Shown: in pieces, positions 41,041-51,351 of the stretch
Layout: each line of letters begins with the position of its first letter
Numbering within the stretch: the stretch's first letter is position 1
DNA from: Blastocladiella emersonii ATCC 22665
Lineage: Eukaryota; Fungi; Blastocladiomycota
Direction: 5' to 3'
DNA: 64,000 nt
Assembly (NCBI GenBank): GCA_025594325.1
Contig: JANHCV010000004.1
Span: 2,108,001-2,172,000 of the forward strand
Notes under the pieces: generated by a model
Told to the model about the DNA's origin: nothing
What the model saw: the letters and a program-made list of their open reading frames with translations, nothing else
Databases searched by the model: none
Position numbers and translations under genes: made by a program

Positions 41041-43067
41041 ATGAAGCTGCTCCTCGTCCTCGCCGCGCTCGGCATGGTCGCGACCGTGTCGGCGGCCAAC
41101 CCCGCGTCGGCGCCGCGCATCGCGAGCCTCGTGGCCACCACGCCCGAGAAGCTCGTCACCAACTACGAGAAGAACCTCGCCTTCAAGTCGCCCTTCGTCA
41201 ACCACCCGGAGCTCGCCGTGCGCCTTGCCTCCAAGGAGCGCGTCACCGAGTCGCTGCGCGCCATCGAGAAGGCCGTCGTCGGCCTCGAGAAGCGCGACGC
41301 GCCCGCTGTCAAGTTCGCCCACGGTGTCGCCTCCGGTGGTCCGTATCCTCTCTCTCGCACGCTCCTCGCCTGGGCGTCCTCCGCCTTTGCGGCGCTCTGG
41401 TGTTGCTCTCGGCGGCGGTGGCGACCGTCGTTCTGCCGTGGCGGTGGCGCACCGCGTCCCGAGATTGGGTGTGATGCAAACCGATCACTCATCGCATCAC
41501 GACGCTCTCAAACTCGCCCTCGACCTTGTTCACTCACAACTTGATACCACGAATCTGTTCAGATGCCCTCGAGGACAGCATCATCCTGTGGACCAAGGTG
41601 ACGCCGCCGTCCAAGGGCGCGTCGGTCGCCGTCGAGTACCACGTCGCCACCGACTCGGCCTTCTCCAACATCGTCAAGAAGGGTGCCGTGCTCACCACGG
41701 CCGACGTCGACTTCACCGTCAAGGTCGACGCCTCGGGCCTCACCCCGGCCACCAAGTACTACTACCGCTTCGTGTCCACTGGCGTCGCCTCGATGACCGG
41801 TCGCACCCAGACGCTGCCGCCGACTGGTGCCGCCATCAAGAAGCTCAAGCTCGCCGTGACCAGCTGCAGCAACATGCCGCACGGCTACTTCCACGCCTAC
41901 CGCCGCATTGCCGAGAACCCCGACGTCGACATGGTCGTCATGCTCGGCGACTCCATGTACGTGACTTTGCTTTCGCTCGCGCGATAGACCCTCAGACTCG
42001 ATCACTCACTCACCCTATCCCCACCACTTTGAACTTCTAGCTACGAGTACGACCTCGACGGCTACAAGCCCGTCGGCGGCAAGATGCCCGCGTCGCGCGA
42101 CCCGCAGCCGCCCAAGGTCATCTCGTCCCTGTACGACTACCGCACGCGCCATGCCCAGTACAAGACCGACGTTGACCAGCAGGCCATGCTGGCGGCCAAG
42201 GGCACGGTTATTACCGTCGACGACCACGAGTTTGCCGATAACGCATGGACCGGTGGTGCCAACAACCACAAGGACGACCGCGACGGTCCGTGGGGCCCGC
42301 GCAAGGCCGCGGCGGCCCGTGCGTGGCACGAGTACATGCCCGTGCGCATCCTCAACATCTCGTCTGACTTCAAGATCTACCGCAAGTTCCAGATCGGCAA
42401 CCTGGTCGACCTGATCATGCTGGACACGCGCATCGACGGGCGCGACCAGCAGGCCAAGGGCGATAGAGAGAAGCGCAACCTCATGGGCAAGGAGCAGGAG
42501 GCCTGGATGCTCGACTCGCTCAAGAACTCCAAGGCGACGTGGAAGGTGCTCGGCCAGCAGGTCATGTTCGCGCCGCTGCCCAGCAAGGTGCTCGCGTGGG
42601 AGATCCCGTTCCTCGCCGACGGCTGGTCGGGCTACCCGGGACCGCGCCAGCGCCTCATCGACTTCATCGTGCGCAACAAGATCTCGTCGGTGGCCGTACT
42701 TACAGGAGACCTGCATGCGAGTGTGGCCAGCGACATCTACAACCCGAACGGGGACTACGACAAGGACACCGGGCGCGGCGCGGTCATGGTCGAGTTCGTC
42801 GGTCCGTCGGTCACGTCGACCGGCCCCGCCCAGGAGTCGGCTACGCTCGACTGGCTCGGCCGTGGCGCTTTCAAGCTCGCTAACAAGGGCGCCAAGTTTG
42901 TGGACCTGTACCGCCACGGGTACATGCTCGTCACCTTCACCCCCGAGAAGGTCCGCACCGAGTACAAGTTCGTCAACTCGGTCAAGACGCTCGACGGCGG
43001 CGCCGACTACACAGCCAAGGTCCTCGAGTCGGCCGTCGGCAGCAACCGGATCACCTACCAGAGCTGA
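41041..43067 (+). CDS. phoD: Secreted PhoD-family alkaline phosphatase
   Basis: Signal peptide, then FAHGVASG|D...IILWT, DFTVKVD..GL.P.T.YYYRF, SCSN..HGYF.AY, DDHEFADNAW, LDTR, WKVLGQQV, DGWSGY and LTGDLH. Introns near 41339-41562 and 41957-42040. Confidence 0.95.
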
Positions 43068-44018
43068 GTAGTAGTAGACGGATACCTAGACGGGCGCGTG
43101 TGTGTACTTCTTTTTTCGAGTGTGTGTGTGCAGCTATTTTTTCAATGATCAGATGGTTTTACGTCGTCTTTCTTTCGTCTACAAGTGCTCTCGTTGATTT
43201 CTTCCTCGAGACTGTACGCAAAACGCGTTTTGAAAAAGTGTCTCGCACGTCACGTGATATCAAAGCGCGTCTCATGCGCCTCGAATGCGTCCGCTTCCGG
43301 CGGCTTGGTCCGTTCTCGAAGGCAAATGGGAGCGGTTCCGAGTCGTTTGGAACGTTTCGTTAATGTTGCGCACTCGTCCGCTTGGATTGGAGACGAGCTG
43401 AAGTCGGCCAGCGTGTGAGCCGCGGGAGCGTGCGCTGCATTCAAGAGCGCGGGCTCGTGAAGGGCCACTTAAATTCGTTCTTTCTCCCTTCCAGACCTTG
43501 GATGAGCGGATTTGAAGCTCATGGATCGGTATCTGGCCACGATTGAGCTGGATTGGGACTCGCGTGTTGAAGTTGCCGCGTGGGACCTCGCTCGTCGTTA
43601 TCGTCCACCATGAGCCAAATCGAGCCAGTTTTCATCGTTTAGGCTCGATTTGGCTCATGGTGGACGATAACGACGAGCGAGGTCCCACGCGGCAACTTCA
43701 ACACGCGAGTCCCAATCCAGCTCAATCGTGGCCAGATACCGATCCATGAGCTTCAAATCCGCTCATCCAAGGTCTGGAAGGGAGAAAGAACGAATTTAGA
43801 GTCCGTTTGGTTCAGATCAGGTGGATCAGCTGAAAAAGTTGCCACGTTTCACCTCACCCCCGTTCATCTCAGCGGCCGTGCGAACCAAACGCCCCGCTGG
43901 ATGAACGCCCCTCCCCCCCCCCCCCGCAATAAAATCTTTCCCACCTCTTTGCAGCCGCACTTATTGCAACGAATCAACACCTAACCTCACGCATCGTGTT
44001 CTCGAGCCCTCAAACAAC

Positions 44019-45336
44019 ATGGGCAAGGGATACAACCGCAAGCTGCGCGGCCTCATGCTCACGGCCGCCCTCGCTCTCCTGCGACGTCTCGCTGCGCGCA
44101 ACGAGCGCCGCTCGTGGGAGCCTATCCGCACGTCCACGCTTTCTGGCGAGTCGTGGGTTCAAGAGCTGCTGACGTGCAACGGCAAAACGCGTTTTTCGGA
44201 AATCGCCCGTATGCCCCGCGAGACCTTCAAGGCCATCTGCCGCCTGTTCCGCGACCGTGGCCTTCTCACCGACGGCCGCGAGCTGTCCATCGAGGCGCGC
44301 TTCATGGTTTTTCTTGTCATGGCCGGCGAGGGCAGCACCAACCGCAACCTCAGGGAGCGGTTCCAAATTTCTGGCGAGACCGCGTCCAGGGTTCTGAAGC
44401 AGGTGCTCGACGCTCTGTACCGCCTGATGCCCGAGTTCATTGTCCAGCCGTCCGATTCTACGCCCGTGCATGAGCGCATCGCCCACGACCCGAAATACGC
44501 TCCGTTCCAGAACGCGGTCGGCGCGCTTGACGGAACGCACATCCCGTTTGTTGTGCCCGCCAAGCTTCACGACTCGTTCCGAAACCGCAAGGGGACCATC
44601 TCCTCAAATGTCCTCGCTGCCTGCGACTTTGACTTGAACTTCACCTACGTTCTCGCAGGGTGGGAGGGCAAGGCGCACGACTCGCGCGTGCTCTCGGACG
44701 CCTTCGCCCGTGGGTTCAAGATCCCCGCCGGCCGCTTCTACCTCGCCGACGGCGGCTACGCAAACCGCACGTCCATCATCGTGCCCTTCAGCGGCACCCG
44801 CTATCATCTTCGCGAGTTTGCCCGCGGCAAGGATGGGTACGTTCTCACTGCCATGACCATCACGTTGGCGCCATCTCATCTGCTTCACCAACGTACGTAG
44901 AGTTAAGAACCGCGAAGAGCTTTTCAATCTGCGTCACGCGTCGCTCCGCAACTCCATTGAGCATATCTTTGGCGTGCTCAAGAAGCGGTTCCGCGTCCTC
45001 TCGATTGGCGCGGCCTACCCAATCAAGACTCAAGTCAAGCTTGTGTACGCGCTCTGCACGCTGCACAACATGATCAACAAGTGGAACCAAGGCGGCAACG
45101 CCTTCTTTCGCGACGCCGAGACGGAGCTCCGGCGCGCGCGGGACGCGGCGCGTGAGGCGCCAGTACGTGGGCGCGAGCCCCTGGACGACGAGAACGAGGA
45201 GGACGACGAGGCCGCTGTCCTCGAGGCCTCGCTGGACGGAGCTCGTCAGCGCGGTATCTCGCTTCGGAACCGCGTCGCAAATGTTCTTTGGACCGAGTAC
45301 AGGCGCGTCATGGCCGCTCGTGGGACCCGTCTTTGA
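44019..45336 (+). CDS. Harbinger/HARBI1-type DDE transposase nuclease
   Basis: GALDGTHIP, NVLAACDFDLNFTYVLAGWEGKAHDSRV, YLADGGY and ELFNLRHASLRNSIEHIFGVLKKRF. Intron at 44837-44900. No stops. Confidence 0.95.
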
Positions 45337-45649
45337 AGGCGCGAAATAATTGTTGTACCCGCATGCATGCTGTAATATACTGATTTGTCAAGTACTATAA
45401 CGTTAGATAAGCGATTCCAGATGATTTGACGCGTCGCTGAGGTCAGAACGCATCGGTGGAGACGCGTCGATCAATCACGTGACGTGCGAGACACTTTGAG
45501 AACCACGCGTTTCTCAACGAGTCGCGTCATTTTCGAGCGAAGGGTAACGATTGAAGATACGATGGACACAAAGCCAGATGTATTGGACACAAATGGGCGA
45601 GAACAAGGCCAGGAAGCAACGCGAGGGGAGGGGGACATGTGCGAGAGAG

Positions 45650-46779
45650 CTACTGAATGAAAAACTCGAGGACGCGCTTGCGCTTCGATTCGGACACGGC
45701 CATGACGCGAAGCGCTTGATCCTCGGTCAGGCGGGTGGCGACGTCGATCTGGTACTCTTCATTGTCATTGTACGCGTCCTGGACCCATTCAAGTGCGGCG
45801 GTCAGAACGGGCTTGGAGTCGGCGGTCGCGACGCTCTGGAACACCTCCTTGATGCCCATGAGGAATTCCGAGTCCGAGAGGCGACGCGAGCTGCTGTCCG
45901 AAGTGCGGCTGCGCTTGCTGGCGGGGGCCGCGTCGTCTTGACCATCAACACCTTCCACGTCACCAGACTCCTTGCCGTCCTGCTCGAGGTGCGAGTACTT
46001 GCCGGTGGCGGTCGAGCTGCCCCACAGCATGTTGGCCTTCTTGTAGTACGGGAAGGGCTTGCAGCCCGCAGTCAGCTCCTCCTTGAGCTCTGCCTACAAT
46101 TGAAGCAGGCCAGGCGCTGTTAGCTCGCCGCGAGTTGACGCGTAACGATATTGAACAAACGTACCGAGAGATCGTTCCAGAACTCCTCTGGCACGTCGAC
46201 CGTGCACTCACCCTCATTCCAGGTGCAGCCGTTGCCCGAGTACGACAGAAGCCGTTTTACGGCGCGAAAACAAGTGCGAAGCTGGAGCCGAACGCTGACG
46301 TTGTTAGCGCTACGGTTGACGCGTGTCCGCAAGACAAAGCGTACGTATGTCACGCGGTTCTTGACCTGCTCCGCCGTAAACTGCATGTTGAACTCGTCCG
46401 ACAGGGCCTGGGCAATCGACACACGGTGCTGGGCCTTGAGCGTGTTGCTGTCGCCGAGCACGCCGTCGTCAGCGAGGTTGCAGAAGTGGTCGAGGAGGAA
46501 GTTGGTCGACGCGGAGCAGAAGGTGGCCTTGCCGCCGCTGGCCTTGCCACTGCTGGCCTTGCTGCCACTGGCCTTGCGCTTGCTTGGCTTGGCGATGGTC
46601 ACGGGCGGCAGCGGGTTGGTCGGCGTGACAGCAGCGTTGCCGTCGCTCCCAGCAGCGTCGTCATCTGCATCCTCGTCGCTATCGGCGGGCGGCGGCGGGA
46701 TTTCGGGCACGTTCTTGACGATCTCCTTGATGGACATGGCCGTATGGCCAGCGCGCTTTTTGCTTGACGGGGGAGCCAT
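45650..46779 (-). CDS. Myb/SANT-like DNA-binding protein of the Harbinger element
   Basis: Basic N-terminus, IAQALSDEFNMQFTAEQVKNR..Y|LRTCF..V..LL..SG.GCTWN..V.V..EFW and KPFPYY..A..LWG. Two introns. Confidence 0.85.
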
Positions 46780-47185
46780 TCTTTTTGGCTTTGAGGGAGG
46801 ACGGGGGAGAGAGAGCGAGTTACTTTGGAGGAAAACGGCGTTTATATAGGCCGGGGAGCACAGCCTGAAGGTTTCAGGGGCGAGCAGACGGGCGATTCAG
46901 CGACGAGGGTTCCATTCAGCTCACCCGGGGGTTGAACCAAACGCCGCGATGAACACGACGGGGTGAAAATGCCACGTTTCAGCTGGGTGAACACCGGACC
47001 GTGTAAAATCGATTGATCCACCTGATTCACCCCGGAACCAAACGGGCCCTTAAGTGGCCCTTCACGAGCCCGCGCTCTTGAATGCAGCGCACGCTCCCGC
47101 GGCTCACACGCTGGCCGACTTCAGCTCGTCTCCAATCCAAGCGGACGAGTGCGCAACATTACATTCCTCAACGTTACGTGTATTC

Positions 47186-49003
47186 TCACTCGCCCGCCGC
47201 TCCTGTACCGGCGCCCATCGACATGGGTAACCACGGTGCGATGCGGCTGAGCACCTTGGCCGCCTCGCGCTGGAAGTTGCGGTCCATGTACAGAATGACA
47301 AGCGGATCAATAGTTGTGCTCGCGTTGATGCAAACCACGAACGCTACAGTTCCCATCATCAAGAGTCAGCACTCGCCGCCCAAAGCGTTCAGCACGTGAG
47401 CCACGCACCCTGATCGAGCCAGCTCAGCACGCGCATCCCAGACTCAAGCGCGTGGAACAAGTGCACAACGAAGAAGACCCAGGTGAGCAAGAACGCAGCG
47501 AAGACCGCCGCGCCGCGGCGGAGCAACAGCGCTTTGGCGCGGAGCAGGCGCAGCTCGTCCTTGCGCCGCGGCGTCTTTCTAGACCCGGTCGCAATCGCAG
47601 GTTTTGTGCTCGAGTTGAGGACTGCCACTGACAACGACGCAGAGACGCTGCCCGCGAGCTGCACGCGCGACGTGGCCGTGGACACGGGCGCCAAGTTGTA
47701 TCCCAGGGTACCGACATCACCCGTGGTCCTCGCCAGCGAAAGAAACTCGGCTTGCTGGGGGATGGGTACCAGTCCCGTGTCGCCGGCGCGTTGGTTTGCT
47801 CGTGGGGTCGTGTCGCCGCCGCTAGACGCACGCAGCATTGACAACAGCGTAGCTAAGCCGCTCAAAGCGCGCGGCATCGACAACGACGGCGTACCTGCAC
47901 CACTACCGCTGCCGCTTGCAGACTCTGAGTTGGAGGTGACTTCGATCGTGCTGGTACGACCAAGAGACTGCGAGACGGTGGAGCGGAACAGGTCGTGGAA
48001 GTTGGACAGCTGCGAGGCAATGGTACTCGACTTACGCATGCCGGTGGGCATGGGGCCGCCGGTGCTGCCACCACCACTGTGTTCCGTCGAAACGAGTCCG
48101 GCACCGAGCTGTTTGGACCGGTGCGCTTTAGCGCGGAGGAAGTTGATGCGCAGCTGGAGCACGATGCCAGCATACACGGCTACAAACTCTCGTGTCAGCA
48201 AGACATGACACGATCCGAATGTTTGCGCGTACCAATGATGACCACGACGTTGAGCAGGATCAAGACCTGGTCCACAATCGAGACGTAAAACATGTAGCCA
48301 ACGTTTCCGAAGCCAGGCGCGCAGTAGAGCCCAGAGTTGGAGATGATGGGTGTCGGACCAGCGATCCAGTGGAGCGCGGTGCTGAGCGCGGACATGGACC
48401 AGCCGATGGCGCCGGCGATCCATACGAAGCACAGTTTGACCTTGACGAGCAGGATGATGGCCACGAACCGCTCGAGCGATGTGAACAGCATGAGGAACAG
48501 GTTGCTACGCGAACGTACAGCGTTAGTAAGAGAGCGCACGATGGCCATGGCGAGTGGGTGACGGCGAGTACCTCGTGAGCATGAAAGTGTGCGTGCTTCC
48601 ATCAAACAGGCAGTGTACAAAGGCCCAGTCACGACGCGCGATGAAGGCCGTCTTTGTCACGAAGAGGAGGATGGCGTAGCAAAAGCTGTTGAAACTACGA
48701 GCCATCGCGGCGTCAGCACAGCGGCTCACCACGGCAGCCATGCGCATACCATAGCATCGATGAGAGCAAGTTGGCCGGATTGGACTTGTACCACCGCGAC
48801 GCGATAGCGACGTGGAGGAACATGGCGCCGCTGAGCACGCCAACGAGGGCCTGTGCCACGTTGACATAGTGATACGAGAGCGCTTCTTCAAGTGGCGTTG
48901 CAAAGTCGAGTGGCTGCCACTCGGCCAATGTCCGGTGCAACAGCACGCCAATGTCATCGGTAGTCCATTGCGGGTTCTGTGGTGGTCCAAGGGTTGGTAG
49001 CAT
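47186..49003 (-). CDS. Rhodopsin-class (class A)-like GPCR, copy A
   Basis: Seven hydrophobic segments, TM3-top Cys (HCLFDG), SLERF, ECL2 Cys (GLYCAPG), long ICL3, F..TW in TM6, TIDPLVILY and helix 8 NFQREA. Multi-exon. Confidence 0.85.
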
Positions 49004-49641
49004 CTTAGTTTACATTCAACGGGAGCGAGAACAAGGCACGCCGAGGGACTACAGACCTGCGCGCATGTGTGATCCGAAGCGATGAAGATGTCTCGCACCA
49101 CGCAGGGGGCGCTGGCCGCGGACATCGGCGATCGAGAGCGTCGCGTTGCTTATGTCCGGCCATGACTCGTGAACTTGCGATCCGTGTTCGCGGCCATCAG
49201 GCCGCGACCATCGCCCGCCATGGCCACCGTTCGATTGTTCACGCGTAAACATGATCTGCGACCTCCTCAGCCAATGCTCCGGGAGAAGTAAACTAACGAG
49301 TTCTTTATATCAAGCACATGTGTTTTAAAGTCAAGCATCGTCCTTTGACTCTGAAGGTGGTCATGGCGAGCTCACCGCCAATACCGTCGCCTGCGCTAGT
49401 GCCTGCCGCTGCATCTGTGGCGGCAGCTGCTCGGTGGAAAGCGGATCGATGTGCTGATGCGGCCACGACGTTCCCGCCTGCAGCTAGCAGGACGAACAGC
49501 GATGGCCGTGTCCAACGGCCATGGTGGCGGCGGCCGCGGCCGCGGTCGCGAACTGGGTTGAGTGATTGAACGGTGTGGATAGCGAAAGGCAGGACGACAG
49601 GTGTGCAACAGGCAAAGTACATCAACGTAACGTGTGTATTC

Positions 49642-51351
49642 TCACTCGCCCGCCACTCCTGTGCCGGCGCCCGTCGACATGGGCAGCCACGGCGCAACGC
49701 GCTTGAGCACCTTGGCCGCCTCGCGCTGGAAGTTGCGGTCCATGTACAGGATGACGAGCGGGTCGATGGTCGTGCCCGCGCAGATGCAGAACACCATCGC
49801 TACAAGCCGTACAGTTAGCGTTAGTGTTCTCACTCCATGATCGTCGAGGAGGAGCAACGAAACGAACCTTGGTCGAGCCAGCTCGGCACGCGCGTGTTAG
49901 AGTCGAGCGCGTGGAACAGGTGCACGACAAAGAAGACCCACGTCAGCGAGAACGCGGCGAAGACGAGCACGCCGCGGCGGAGCAGCAGCGCCTCGGCGCG
50001 GAGCAGGCGCAGCTCGTCCTTGCGCCGTGCCGGTTTCTTAGAGACAGCGAGCCGCGGTCCCAAAACCAGCGCCGACGCGGATCCATTCGGGAGCTGCGCG
50101 CGCGACGTCGCCGCGGACGCGGGCGCCGACTCGGGACCCGGCCCGCCCGGTAGCGAGAGGAGCTCAGCCTGCTGCGCTGCCGGCGGTGGCACGTCGCCGA
50201 CGCGTCGATTCGGCCGCGGCGACGCGTCGCCCGCGCTCGAAGCGTGCGGCATTGCTGCCGGCGTGCCAGCCCCGCTCCCGCTGTGTGCCGCGCCGCTGCC
50301 GCTCGCGGACTCCGAGTCGGACGCGACCTCGGACGTGCTGAGCCCGACGACGGACCGCGAGATGGTGGAGCGGAACAGGTCGCGGAAGCTCGCGAGGTGC
50401 GAGACGACGGTGCTCGACTTGCGGATGCCCGTGGGTGCTGGAGGGCGGCTCCCGGCGCCGCCGCCGCCGCTGCCGCCGCCGTGGTCTGTCGACACGAGAC
50501 CCACGCCGAGCTGCTTGGAGCGGTTCGATTTCGCGCGGCGGAAGTTGGTGCGGAGCTGGACGATGATCCCGGCGTACACGGCGATGATGACCACGACGTT
50601 GAGCAGGATCAGGCACTGGTCAATGACCGTGACAATGAACATGTACCCGGCACGGCCGAACCCGGGCGCGCAGTAGAGCCCGGAGTTCGAGATGACGGGC
50701 GTCGGGCCAGCGATCCAGTGCAGCGCGGTGCTGAGCGCGGACATGGACCAGCCGATGGCGCCGGCGAACCACACGAGGTTCAGCTTGACCTTGACGAGCA
50801 GGATGATGGCCATGAACCGCTCGAGCGACGTGAACAGCATGAGGAACAGGTTGCTGCGCTAACGCGCGGCGTCGGTGAGTTGATCAAGCGGTGGCCATGG
50901 TCGATAAGGTGTACCTCGTGAGCATGAACGTGTGCGTGCTCCCGTCAAAGATGCAGTGCGCGAACGCCCACTCGCGGCGCGCGACGAACGCCGCCTTGGT
51001 CACAAATATGAGGACGGCGTAGCAGAAGCTGTTGAAGCTACGCCCGCGCGGCGTCAGCACGGTGGGCCACGGCACGGCGGCCACGGACAGCAGGTACCAT
51101 AGTAGCAGCGTGAGCAAGTTGGCCGGATTGGACCTGTACCACCGCGACCCGATCGCGACGTAGAGGAAGAATGCGCCGGCGAAGGCGCCAATTACGGCCT
51201 GCACCATGTTGACGTAGTAGTAGGGCATGGCCTCCTCGAGCGGCGTCGCAAAGTCGAGCGGCTGCCACTCGGCCAGCGTACGGTGCAGCAGCACGCCAAT
51301 GTCATCGGTGGTCCAGTGCGGGTTTCGTGGTGGTCCGAGTGTTGGTAGCAT
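49642..51351 (-). CDS. Rhodopsin-class (class A)-like GPCR, copy B
   Basis: Same architecture and closely similar sequence as copy A (MLPTLGPP...LAEWQPLDFATPLEEA, SLERF, TIDPLVILY). Confidence 0.85.

Follow-up and report, generated by a model that had tools for sequence, protein, structure and literature searches.

PIF/Harbinger elements such as maize PIF, rice Ping/Pong and Harbinger3_DR possess two genes, one for a DDE_Tnp_4 transposase and one for a Myb/SANT-like protein. They also have a 3-bp TSD of TTA, short TIRs, subterminal repeats and many near-identical copies. All of these features are shared by an element of Blastocladiella emersonii, which differs from the known representatives in its host, an early-diverging fungus, and in its best protein match of 51%. 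The element is located within one arm of a perfect palindrome. In maize, alternative transposition of Ac/Ds (sister-chromatid or reversed-ends) leads to inverted duplications, and there, as here, a DDE cut-and-paste transposon is joined with an inverted duplication of host flanking sequence. However, Ac/Ds breakpoints are the transposon ends, whereas the Harbinger element described here lies inside an arm, has a normal TSD and is 157 and 109 bp away from the palindrome boundaries. A literature search found no report tying a PIF/Harbinger transposase to palindrome formation, and to our knowledge no such link is on record for the superfamily.

Foldback transposons and long-TIR MITEs are likewise almost entirely palindromic, measure a few hundred bp and have a very small loop, while the palindrome of B. 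emersonii differs in being single-copy, without TSD and with a host-like outer end. Foldback (snap-back) duplications have in common with it an inverted copy adjoining the template, a short unpaired spacer and little or no homology at the distal junction. In yeast, foldback-templated inverted duplications arise at breaks, where Pol delta extends one end while end joining captures the other; the insertions are mostly 5–34 bp long (PMC11724301), so that the 266 bp found here fall outside the documented size range. SD-MMEJ, or snap-back synthesis by Pol-theta, is a related known system (PMC5728401, PMC2943611).

The stretch analysed here (the window) comprises 64,000 nt of B. emersonii ATCC 22665 (Blastocladiomycota; assembly GCA_025594325.1, contig JANHCV010000004.1, positions 2,108,001–2,172,000, forward strand), and all coordinates below are window positions. 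Reads were checked through k-mer contigs (k = 31) from four runs, X1 to X4, which share their sample with the assembly and whose contigs carry no long-range information.

The palindrome and its Harbinger element

The features of the locus are listed in Table 1. A script check found the left arm to be the reverse complement of 43642–43798 plus 47053–47161 and equally of 43642–43795 plus 47050–47161, in both cases with 0 mismatches over 266 nt. A repeat search resolved the same structure into two inverted repeats of 100% identity, 43470–43626/43642–43798 (157 nt, 15-nt spacer) and 43361–43472/47050–47161 (112 nt), which overlap in just the TAA that represents the empty site of the left arm. The 266-bp exact reverse complement with a 15-nt loop, first described in a sequence-only reading, was therefore correct to the base, and the repeat search likewise bore out the 157-bp perfect palindrome next to the left TIR. 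Without the insert the palindrome measures 547 bp, while the structure with the Harbinger element extends over 3.8 kb. It sits between convergent PhoD and GPCR genes. The latter is on the minus strand and has its stop codon at 47186–47188, so that the right arm ends 25 nt downstream of this codon. For the 481 nt around the palindrome centre a fold of −250 kcal/mol is predicted (z = −38). An origin of the inverted-repeat structure by chance is excluded; no other inverted repeat of at least 30 nt and >86% identity was found in the 64-kb window. Rfam yielded no family within 42800–47600.

Table 1. Features of the palindrome locus (window positions)
Feature	Position	Strand	Remark
Left arm, 266 nt (inverted copy, probably derived); unoccupied TAA 43470–43472	43361–43626		Exact complementarity to insert-free right arm
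Unpaired centre (loop), 15 nt, AGTTTTCATCGTTTA, TTA at its end	43627–43641		
Right arm, inner part, 157 nt, including left TSD copy TTA 43796–43798	43642–43798		
Right TSD copy TTA 47050–47052 and right arm, outer part, 47053–47161	47050–47161		
PIF/Harbinger element, 3251 bp, TSD TTA 43796–98/47050–52	43799–47049	+	
Transposase gene, 417 aa, one 64-nt intron 44837–44900	44019–45336	+	Pfam DDE_Tnp_4
Myb/SANT-like DNA-binding partner gene, ~340 aa, two introns, splice sites uncertain	45650–46779	−	
TIR-like motif GTCCGCTTGG, 9/10 to Harbinger left TIR core; mirror copy 47137–47146 (−)	43376–43385	+	
Related TIR-like motifs of the left flank; 43340–43353 = GAGTCGTTTGGAAC	43289–43296 and 43340–43353		

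The Harbinger TIRs at 43799–43813 and 47035–47049 (GAGTCCGTTTGGTTC and GGGCCCGTTTGGTTC) match in 13 of 15 positions, and subterminal copies of GCGTTTGGTTC are found near 43886–43896 and 46938–46948. Both genes of the element are intact. The transposase contains the Pfam domain DDE_Tnp_4 (PF13359; 4.6e-12), and the spliced protein has an intact catalytic DDE triad, conserving the DGTHIP, D(G/A)GY and IE(R/H) columns if compared to HARBI1/ALP1-like proteins. Such proteins are among its homologues, which reach 51% identity; the homologue search gave nothing above this value. Consequently, the genes of the element are without annotation in the public proteome of the B. emersonii genome. The partner gene matches Myb_DNA-bind_3 (PF12776; 3.2e-05), and removal of its two GT-AG introns results in a single open frame.

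The Harbinger unitig has a depth of 1111, 4173, 194 and 27 in the four runs, about 35 times that of the flanks and more if summed. At both termini of the element the k-mer contigs show many loose ends with different flanks from other insertion sites. The element is apparently an autonomous member of a high-copy and recently active family. This copy carries at least ~13–20 substitutions that are absent from every k-mer contig, and its left terminal bases are GAGT, while GGGC is the majority on the contigs of other copies.

The locus thus presents a filled and an empty site as a pair on one molecule, as had been claimed from the sequence, and both the structure and the reads confirm a Harbinger element at a TTA of one arm with the exact unoccupied target in the other. 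The pair proves a canonical, TTA-duplicating insertion of an apparently autonomous Harbinger element in an early-diverging fungus.

Origin of the inverted duplication

The locus is made of familiar events, a local inverted duplication and a Harbinger insertion. That the duplication is unique and local follows from three observations. First, the depth of the arm is 28.6 in run X1 (flanks 30), 217 in X2 (flanks 118–140) and 8.8 in X3 (flanks 5–8), and across the four runs amounts to about 1–2 times that of the flanks, compared to about 35 times or more for the Harbinger element. Second, the 64-kb window holds no second copy of the arm. Third, no TSD is present: the outer flanks (...TTTCGT to the left, CATTCC... 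to the right) lack a direct repeat, in line with the earlier remark that no longer TSD is visible, and only the palindromic termini TAA/TTA are found.

Of the two arms, the right is probably native and the left derived, since the outer end of the right arm is collinear with the tandem GPCR paralogue (GGACGA---GTG[C/T]GCAACA; P ~0.01 in an end-anchored 50-nt comparison). The alternative native junction gave P = 0.88. Local alignment of the whole arm against the sequence upstream of the paralogue was not significant.

On balance we favour, with some reserve, a young, unique and local inverted duplication that arose by foldback or template-switch repair and was followed by an ordinary Harbinger insertion. 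A 266-bp piece downstream of the GPCR gene would have been copied in inverted orientation 15 nt to the left, giving the 547-bp palindrome. As the mechanism we infer either foldback (snap-back) synthesis at a double-strand break or a template switch during replication. Later, the Harbinger element would have inserted by cut and paste at the TTA of the native right arm and duplicated this TTA. As only the right arm would have been hit, the left arm keeps the unoccupied target.

The distal junction of the duplication comprises 0–3 nt of homology. At the loop ends no priming microhomology is visible, and these ends are unable to pair (A/A, T/G, T/T). Any priming homology would be hidden within the perfect arms.

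The substitutions of the Harbinger copy are an argument against this explanation: if they postdate the insertion, either the arms have been homogenised or the events took a different order, since 0 of 266 positions differ between the arms while the element carries the ~13–20 substitutions mentioned above. It is just as conceivable, however, that a rare source copy already had them.

With its 266 bp, the duplication documents an unusually long and perfectly kept case of the foldback type. A perfect hairpin of 157 bp with a 15-nt loop stays in the 3' region of a gene, a kind of structure for which fragility or the formation of dsRNA is to be expected.

Further arguments against the foldback explanation are the size of the copy, the lack of visible priming microhomology, and the fact that it has to treat as coincidence both the TTA/TAA found at each breakpoint and the clustering of TIR-like motifs at the locus.

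Alternative origins

One might speculate that the palindrome was triggered by Harbinger itself, through a break made by the transposase and repaired into an inverted copy. Such a break could have arisen when an earlier copy or MITE was excised at a TWA site of the locus, or when a TIR-like pseudo-end was cleaved. Pairing of the nascent TTA with the overhang that the TSD had left on the other broken end would have brought foldback synthesis to a halt, and the present Harbinger element would be a later or local re-insertion. We regard this scenario as possible but doubtful. In its favour, all three breakpoints touch TWA (TAA 43361–63, loop-end TTA 43639–41 and TTA 47159–61), and the window's only Harbinger element and only high-identity palindrome occur at the same place. 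While the palindrome breakpoints are not located at the ends of the resident element, the centre abuts a TTA directly followed by the TIR-like 15-mer GGCTCGATTTGGCTC, with which the inner right arm opens. This 15-mer matches the Harbinger TIR in 10 of 15 positions, and among the 486 TWA-flanked sites of the window outside Harbinger it is the sole one to reach that level. A start-anchored 95-nt alignment of the inner arm against the Harbinger end falls into the top 0.15–0.6% of the null (P ~0.002–0.006). Furthermore, the motif GTCCG[CT]TT occurs four times if both strands of the window (128 kb) are counted, each time at the palindrome locus. However, the motif evidence is all post hoc and each piece of it modest. 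In a gapped 30-nt anchored test the resemblance was not significant, as 37 of 427 null sites scored as well, and local alignment of the arm against the whole Harbinger element gave no significant similarity. Beside the loop there is neither a footprint nor a second TSD copy, and the outer TIR-like motif lies in sequence seemingly older than the GPCR tandem duplication.

A more general version would be that breaks made by the Harbinger transposase are recurrently foldback-repaired in B. emersonii and that the family seeds many young palindromes of the genome, a proposal we put forward tentatively and do not expect to hold. The breaks could occur at the ends of elements, at TWA targets or at TIR-like pseudo-ends, and the present locus, in which each breakpoint touches TWA and the centre carries a TIR-like motif, would be one small and fully readable example. 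If an association of Harbinger with inverted duplications were true genome-wide, it would tie PIF/Harbinger transposases to palindrome formation.

The sequence-only reading had also raised the idea that Harbinger targets cruciform or hairpin DNA. This is unsupported, since the insertion is located mid-stem at an ordinary TTA that is separated from the centre by 157 bp and from the base by 109 bp.

It is improbable that the duplication came after the insertion. In this case arms of about 3.5 kb, including Harbinger, would have been formed, and the left-arm copy would later have been excised precisely, restoring a single TAA. PIF/Harbinger/Tourist elements do generally excise precisely (PMC4561436), and a somewhat diverged Harbinger element would be reconciled with identical arms, yet only if the duplication is recent. 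However, this order of events requires a larger duplication and one extra event, while its outcome equals that of a site never occupied and nothing speaks positively for it.

Very unlikely is a mobile foldback element, that is, a 547-bp palindrome belonging to a dispersed family of foldback elements or long-TIR MITEs and later hit by Harbinger. Harbinger-TIR-like motifs do occur near both arm ends. However, the low depth of the arm in all four runs argues against dispersal, no contig places it in another genomic context, and no further copy lies within the window. The palindrome is without flanking direct repeat (CGT to the left, CAT to the right), and the resemblance of the outer arm end to the flank of the tandem paralogue points to host sequence. 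Thus, of the initial suggestion of a foldback element or an inverted duplication, depth and missing TSD leave the latter standing and not the former.

A Tourist-like MITE, as a sub-segment of the arm or the whole arm, was rejected as well, because the two ends do not match as TIRs and the triplets beside them disagree (TTA and GTG; CAC and AGT). We also discarded the idea that the arm had been re-inserted canonically, as a transposed unit, since the left arm has no TAA at its loop end.

Presence in sequencing reads

The palindrome and its filled and empty sites are present in the k-mer contigs of the reads, which answers the worry, voiced from the sequence, about a chimeric or foldback-read artefact. 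The junction between flank and left arm is contained in contigs X1 rec1 and X2 rec9, which both stop exactly 30 nt (k−1) into the arm. Contig X1 rec2 comprises the empty site and the inner arm, X3 rec18 the loop as well as the inner and outer arm with the empty site, while X4 rec30 links the right end of Harbinger with the outer right arm and the right flank.

Perfect palindromes form a known class of artefact and Pilon polishing could raise the apparent identity of the arms, yet an artefact of assembly or library, for instance a palindromic read of chimeric origin or a heterozygous bubble that was joined wrongly, is hardly credible here, as all novel junction k-mers have roughly the depth of the flanks in separate runs, the palindrome is internal with unique genes on either side, and the HiFi reads of the published assembly (mean ~10.5 kb, ~185x) are long enough to cross the 3.8-kb structure (PMC9730499). 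An X3 contig that skips 3254 nt was rejected as a record of an empty right arm, since a graph walk at k = 31 cannot separate the arms. Depth, linker and year clues are suggestive of different platforms for the runs X1 to X4.

The palindrome and its native arm

The palindrome between the convergent PhoD gene and the minus-strand GPCR gene carries a Harbinger element in its right arm and the corresponding empty site in its left arm. By script comparison, the 266-nt left arm is the exact reverse complement of the two right-arm parts joined together (differences 0/266), and the sequence-only reading was right to the base. A repeat search delivered two perfect inverted pairs, one of 157 nt with a 15-nt spacer and one of 112 nt, which share the TAA at 43470-43472. 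The left arm runs continuously through ...GGGCCACT-TAA-ATTCGTTC..., and the right arm holds its 3251-bp insert between two TTA copies. No comparable inverted repeat was found elsewhere in the window, where the runners-up were only 71-86% matches, low-complexity or coding repeats. As single-stranded DNA, the palindrome centre folds at -250 kcal/mol vs. -76 kcal/mol for shuffles.

Initially, both a foldback element and an inverted duplication had been considered. In k-mer contigs of four sequencing runs of one sample (X1-X4), the arm reaches only 1-2x the depth of its flanks (X1, 28.6 vs. 30; X2, 217 vs. 118-140; X3, 8.8 vs. 5-8) and occurs in no other genomic context among the contigs listed, while the window holds no second arm copy and the palindrome lacks flanking direct repeats. 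Thus it is a unique local inverted duplication, and the idea of a dispersed foldback family was abandoned.

Coordinates of the palindrome, the Harbinger element and neighboring features
Feature	Position	Strand	Remarks
Left arm	43361-43626		266 nt, empty site
Loop	43627-43641		15 nt
Right arm, inner part	43642-43798
Right arm, outer part	47053-47161
Harbinger element	43799-47049		3251 bp
Harbinger TIRs			GAGTCCGTTTGGTTC and GGGCCCGTTTGGTTC, 13/15 matching
Internal TIR-core copies	43885-43896 and 46937-46948	-	GCGTTTGGTTC, ~90-100 bp inside each Harbinger end
DDE_Tnp_4 transposase gene		+	417 aa, one 64-nt intron (44837-44900)
Myb_DNA-bind_3 protein gene		-	one reading frame once two introns are removed
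Stop codon of GPCR gene	47186-47188	-	right of palindrome
Tandem GPCR-like pair	47168-48700 and 49622-51043	-	71% DNA identity

From comparison with the GPCR paralogue, we regard the right arm with moderate confidence as host sequence, and the left arm as a 266-nt inverted copy placed 15 nt to the left. BLAST similarity of the GPCR pair begins at 47168 (= 49622) and the pair remains similar for ~45 nt beyond the stop codon, into the outer arm. Collinearity with the paralogue continues upstream of the 47168 anchor into the outer right-arm end (GGACGA---GTG[C/T]GCAACA), with a score reached by 1% of random 50-mers, whereas the alternative of a native junction between loop and right flank lies at the 88th percentile of chance (P = 0.88). 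Second support for a native right arm comes from taking the left arm away: the end of the left flank, the loop and the start of the inner arm then meet and form a dense cluster of TCG(A)TTTGG-like motifs.

Origin of the structure

The inverted copy lies beside its template with a short unpaired spacer, and its distal junction has 0-3 nt homology, which points to either foldback synthesis or a template switch. Either a resected break would have undergone foldback (snap-back) synthesis and then been closed by end joining, or the template would have been switched during replication. Since the loop ends are unable to pair, the priming microhomology would have to be hidden inside the arms. In yeast, the same hybrid of foldback and end joining gives insertions of mostly 5-34 bp (PMC11724301), while the 266 bp found here are much longer.

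In the simplest order, the duplication would have come first and the Harbinger insertion into one arm second. A larger duplication including the Harbinger, followed by precise excision from the left arm, could have led to the same arrangement and PIF/Tourist elements do excise precisely as a rule (PMC4561436). However, this reverse order requires a bigger duplication and an extra excision. At ~13-20 sites, mostly transitions, the Harbinger copy matches none of the k-mer contigs; either these variants were inherited from a rare source, or conversion or polishing kept the arms identical. Two familiar processes in sequence offer the best explanation of the structure, and the locus is of moderate interest as an insertion site that documents itself.

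A break made by the transposase seems an unlikely trigger of the inverted duplication, although several observations would fit. TWA occurs at all three breakpoints (TAA 43361-63, loop-end TTA 43639-41, TTA 47159-61), and PIF-type transposases cleave the TSD in a staggered manner, leaving TSD microhomology on the broken ends (PMC4561436), which could account for the copying stop at TTA. The inner arm end right after TTA shows a 10/15 TIR match, which is unique to it among the window's 486 TWA sites outside the Harbinger, and the alignment of the first 95 nt of the inner arm with the Harbinger end beats 99.4-99.85% of random segments. Furthermore, all 4 copies of GTCCG[CT]TT on the two strands of the window lie here (left flank, two arms, Harbinger TIR). 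However, these motif and breakpoint observations are all post hoc, a gapped 30-nt test of the inner arm end against the Harbinger end was not significant, arm and Harbinger have no overall similarity, and the outer TIR-like motif lies in sequence seemingly older than the GPCR duplication. The geometry gives no support to the suggested targeting of hairpin or cruciform DNA: the insertion hit an ordinary TTA in the middle of the stem, with 157 bp separating it from the centre and 109 bp from the base.

Support from reads and assembly

The palindrome with its Harbinger is real and was correctly described, and an artefact is highly improbable. The ATCC 22665 assembly (21 contigs, 34.27 Mb) was built from PacBio HiFi reads (mean read 10.5 kb, 6.37 Gb, ~185x), with 65-nt Illumina reads used for polishing (PMC9730499); HiFi reads of this mean length are long enough to cross the entire 3.8-kb structure. 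The read support consists of Logan k=31 contigs from the four runs; the runs probably include the assembly's own data, and contigs of this kind carry no long-range information. All novel junctions are present in these raw data at about the depth of the flanks. Two contigs from the left flank (X1 rec1, X2 rec9) end at 43390, exactly 30 nt (k-1) inside the arm, as a repeat boundary at 43361 predicts. The empty site and the inner arm lie within X1 rec2; the loop is found in X3 rec18, along with the TTA and both the inner and the outer arm; in X4 rec30, the outer arm connects the right end of the Harbinger to the right flank. Homologues of the flanking PhoD have their best matches in Allomyces, Catenaria and Blastocladiella.

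Depths, a loxP linker in X4 and run years suggest that the runs represent different library types; X1, at a depth of ~30, is as expected of a 65-nt Illumina run. At 47289, an X4 contig runs into the loxP-type linker, which we take to be an artefact of a Cre-lox paired-end library and not genome. One contig skipping 3254 nt was rejected as an empty right arm, since a graph walk cannot separate the arms.

The Harbinger element and its relatives

The insert is a complete PIF/Harbinger element: ATCAGGTGGATCA comes next after the TIR on both sides, and the catalytic columns of the DDE_Tnp_4 protein align with HARBI1/ALP1-like proteins. In the k-mer contigs of the four runs, single Harbinger unitigs reach ~35x flank depth, more when summed, and both termini are joined to many different sequences; thus the family is large and recently active. 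The left internal TIR-core copy is inverted relative to the TIR and forms a ready-made short inverted-repeat unit. The left terminus (43799-43802) reads GAGT here and mostly GGGC, as in the right TIR, in contigs of other copies, while GAGT also occurs on at least two other insertions. Consequently, two terminal variants coexist in the family. Near the left end, a poly-C tract (43908-43926) varies in length by copy, with an 11-nt deletion in one X4 contig. Among the ~7 visible flanks of other insertions, ATTTA recurs directly before the left end (43794-43798 in the window) and TTAAG(T) directly after the right (47050-47055), suggesting that the preferred target extends beyond TWA and is partly palindromic.

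Downstream of PhoD, a stretch of ~55-65 nt (43221-43273) shares 82% identity, in inverted orientation, with the spacer between the two Harbinger genes (45459-45512), including an exact 24-nt core (43235-43258 / 45474-45497) that includes CACGTG. This shared segment may represent a small dispersed repeat or a terminator-like module. An X2 contig follows the window to 43274, beyond which it runs on in unrelated sequence; segment 43221-43273 is therefore common to a third genomic context.
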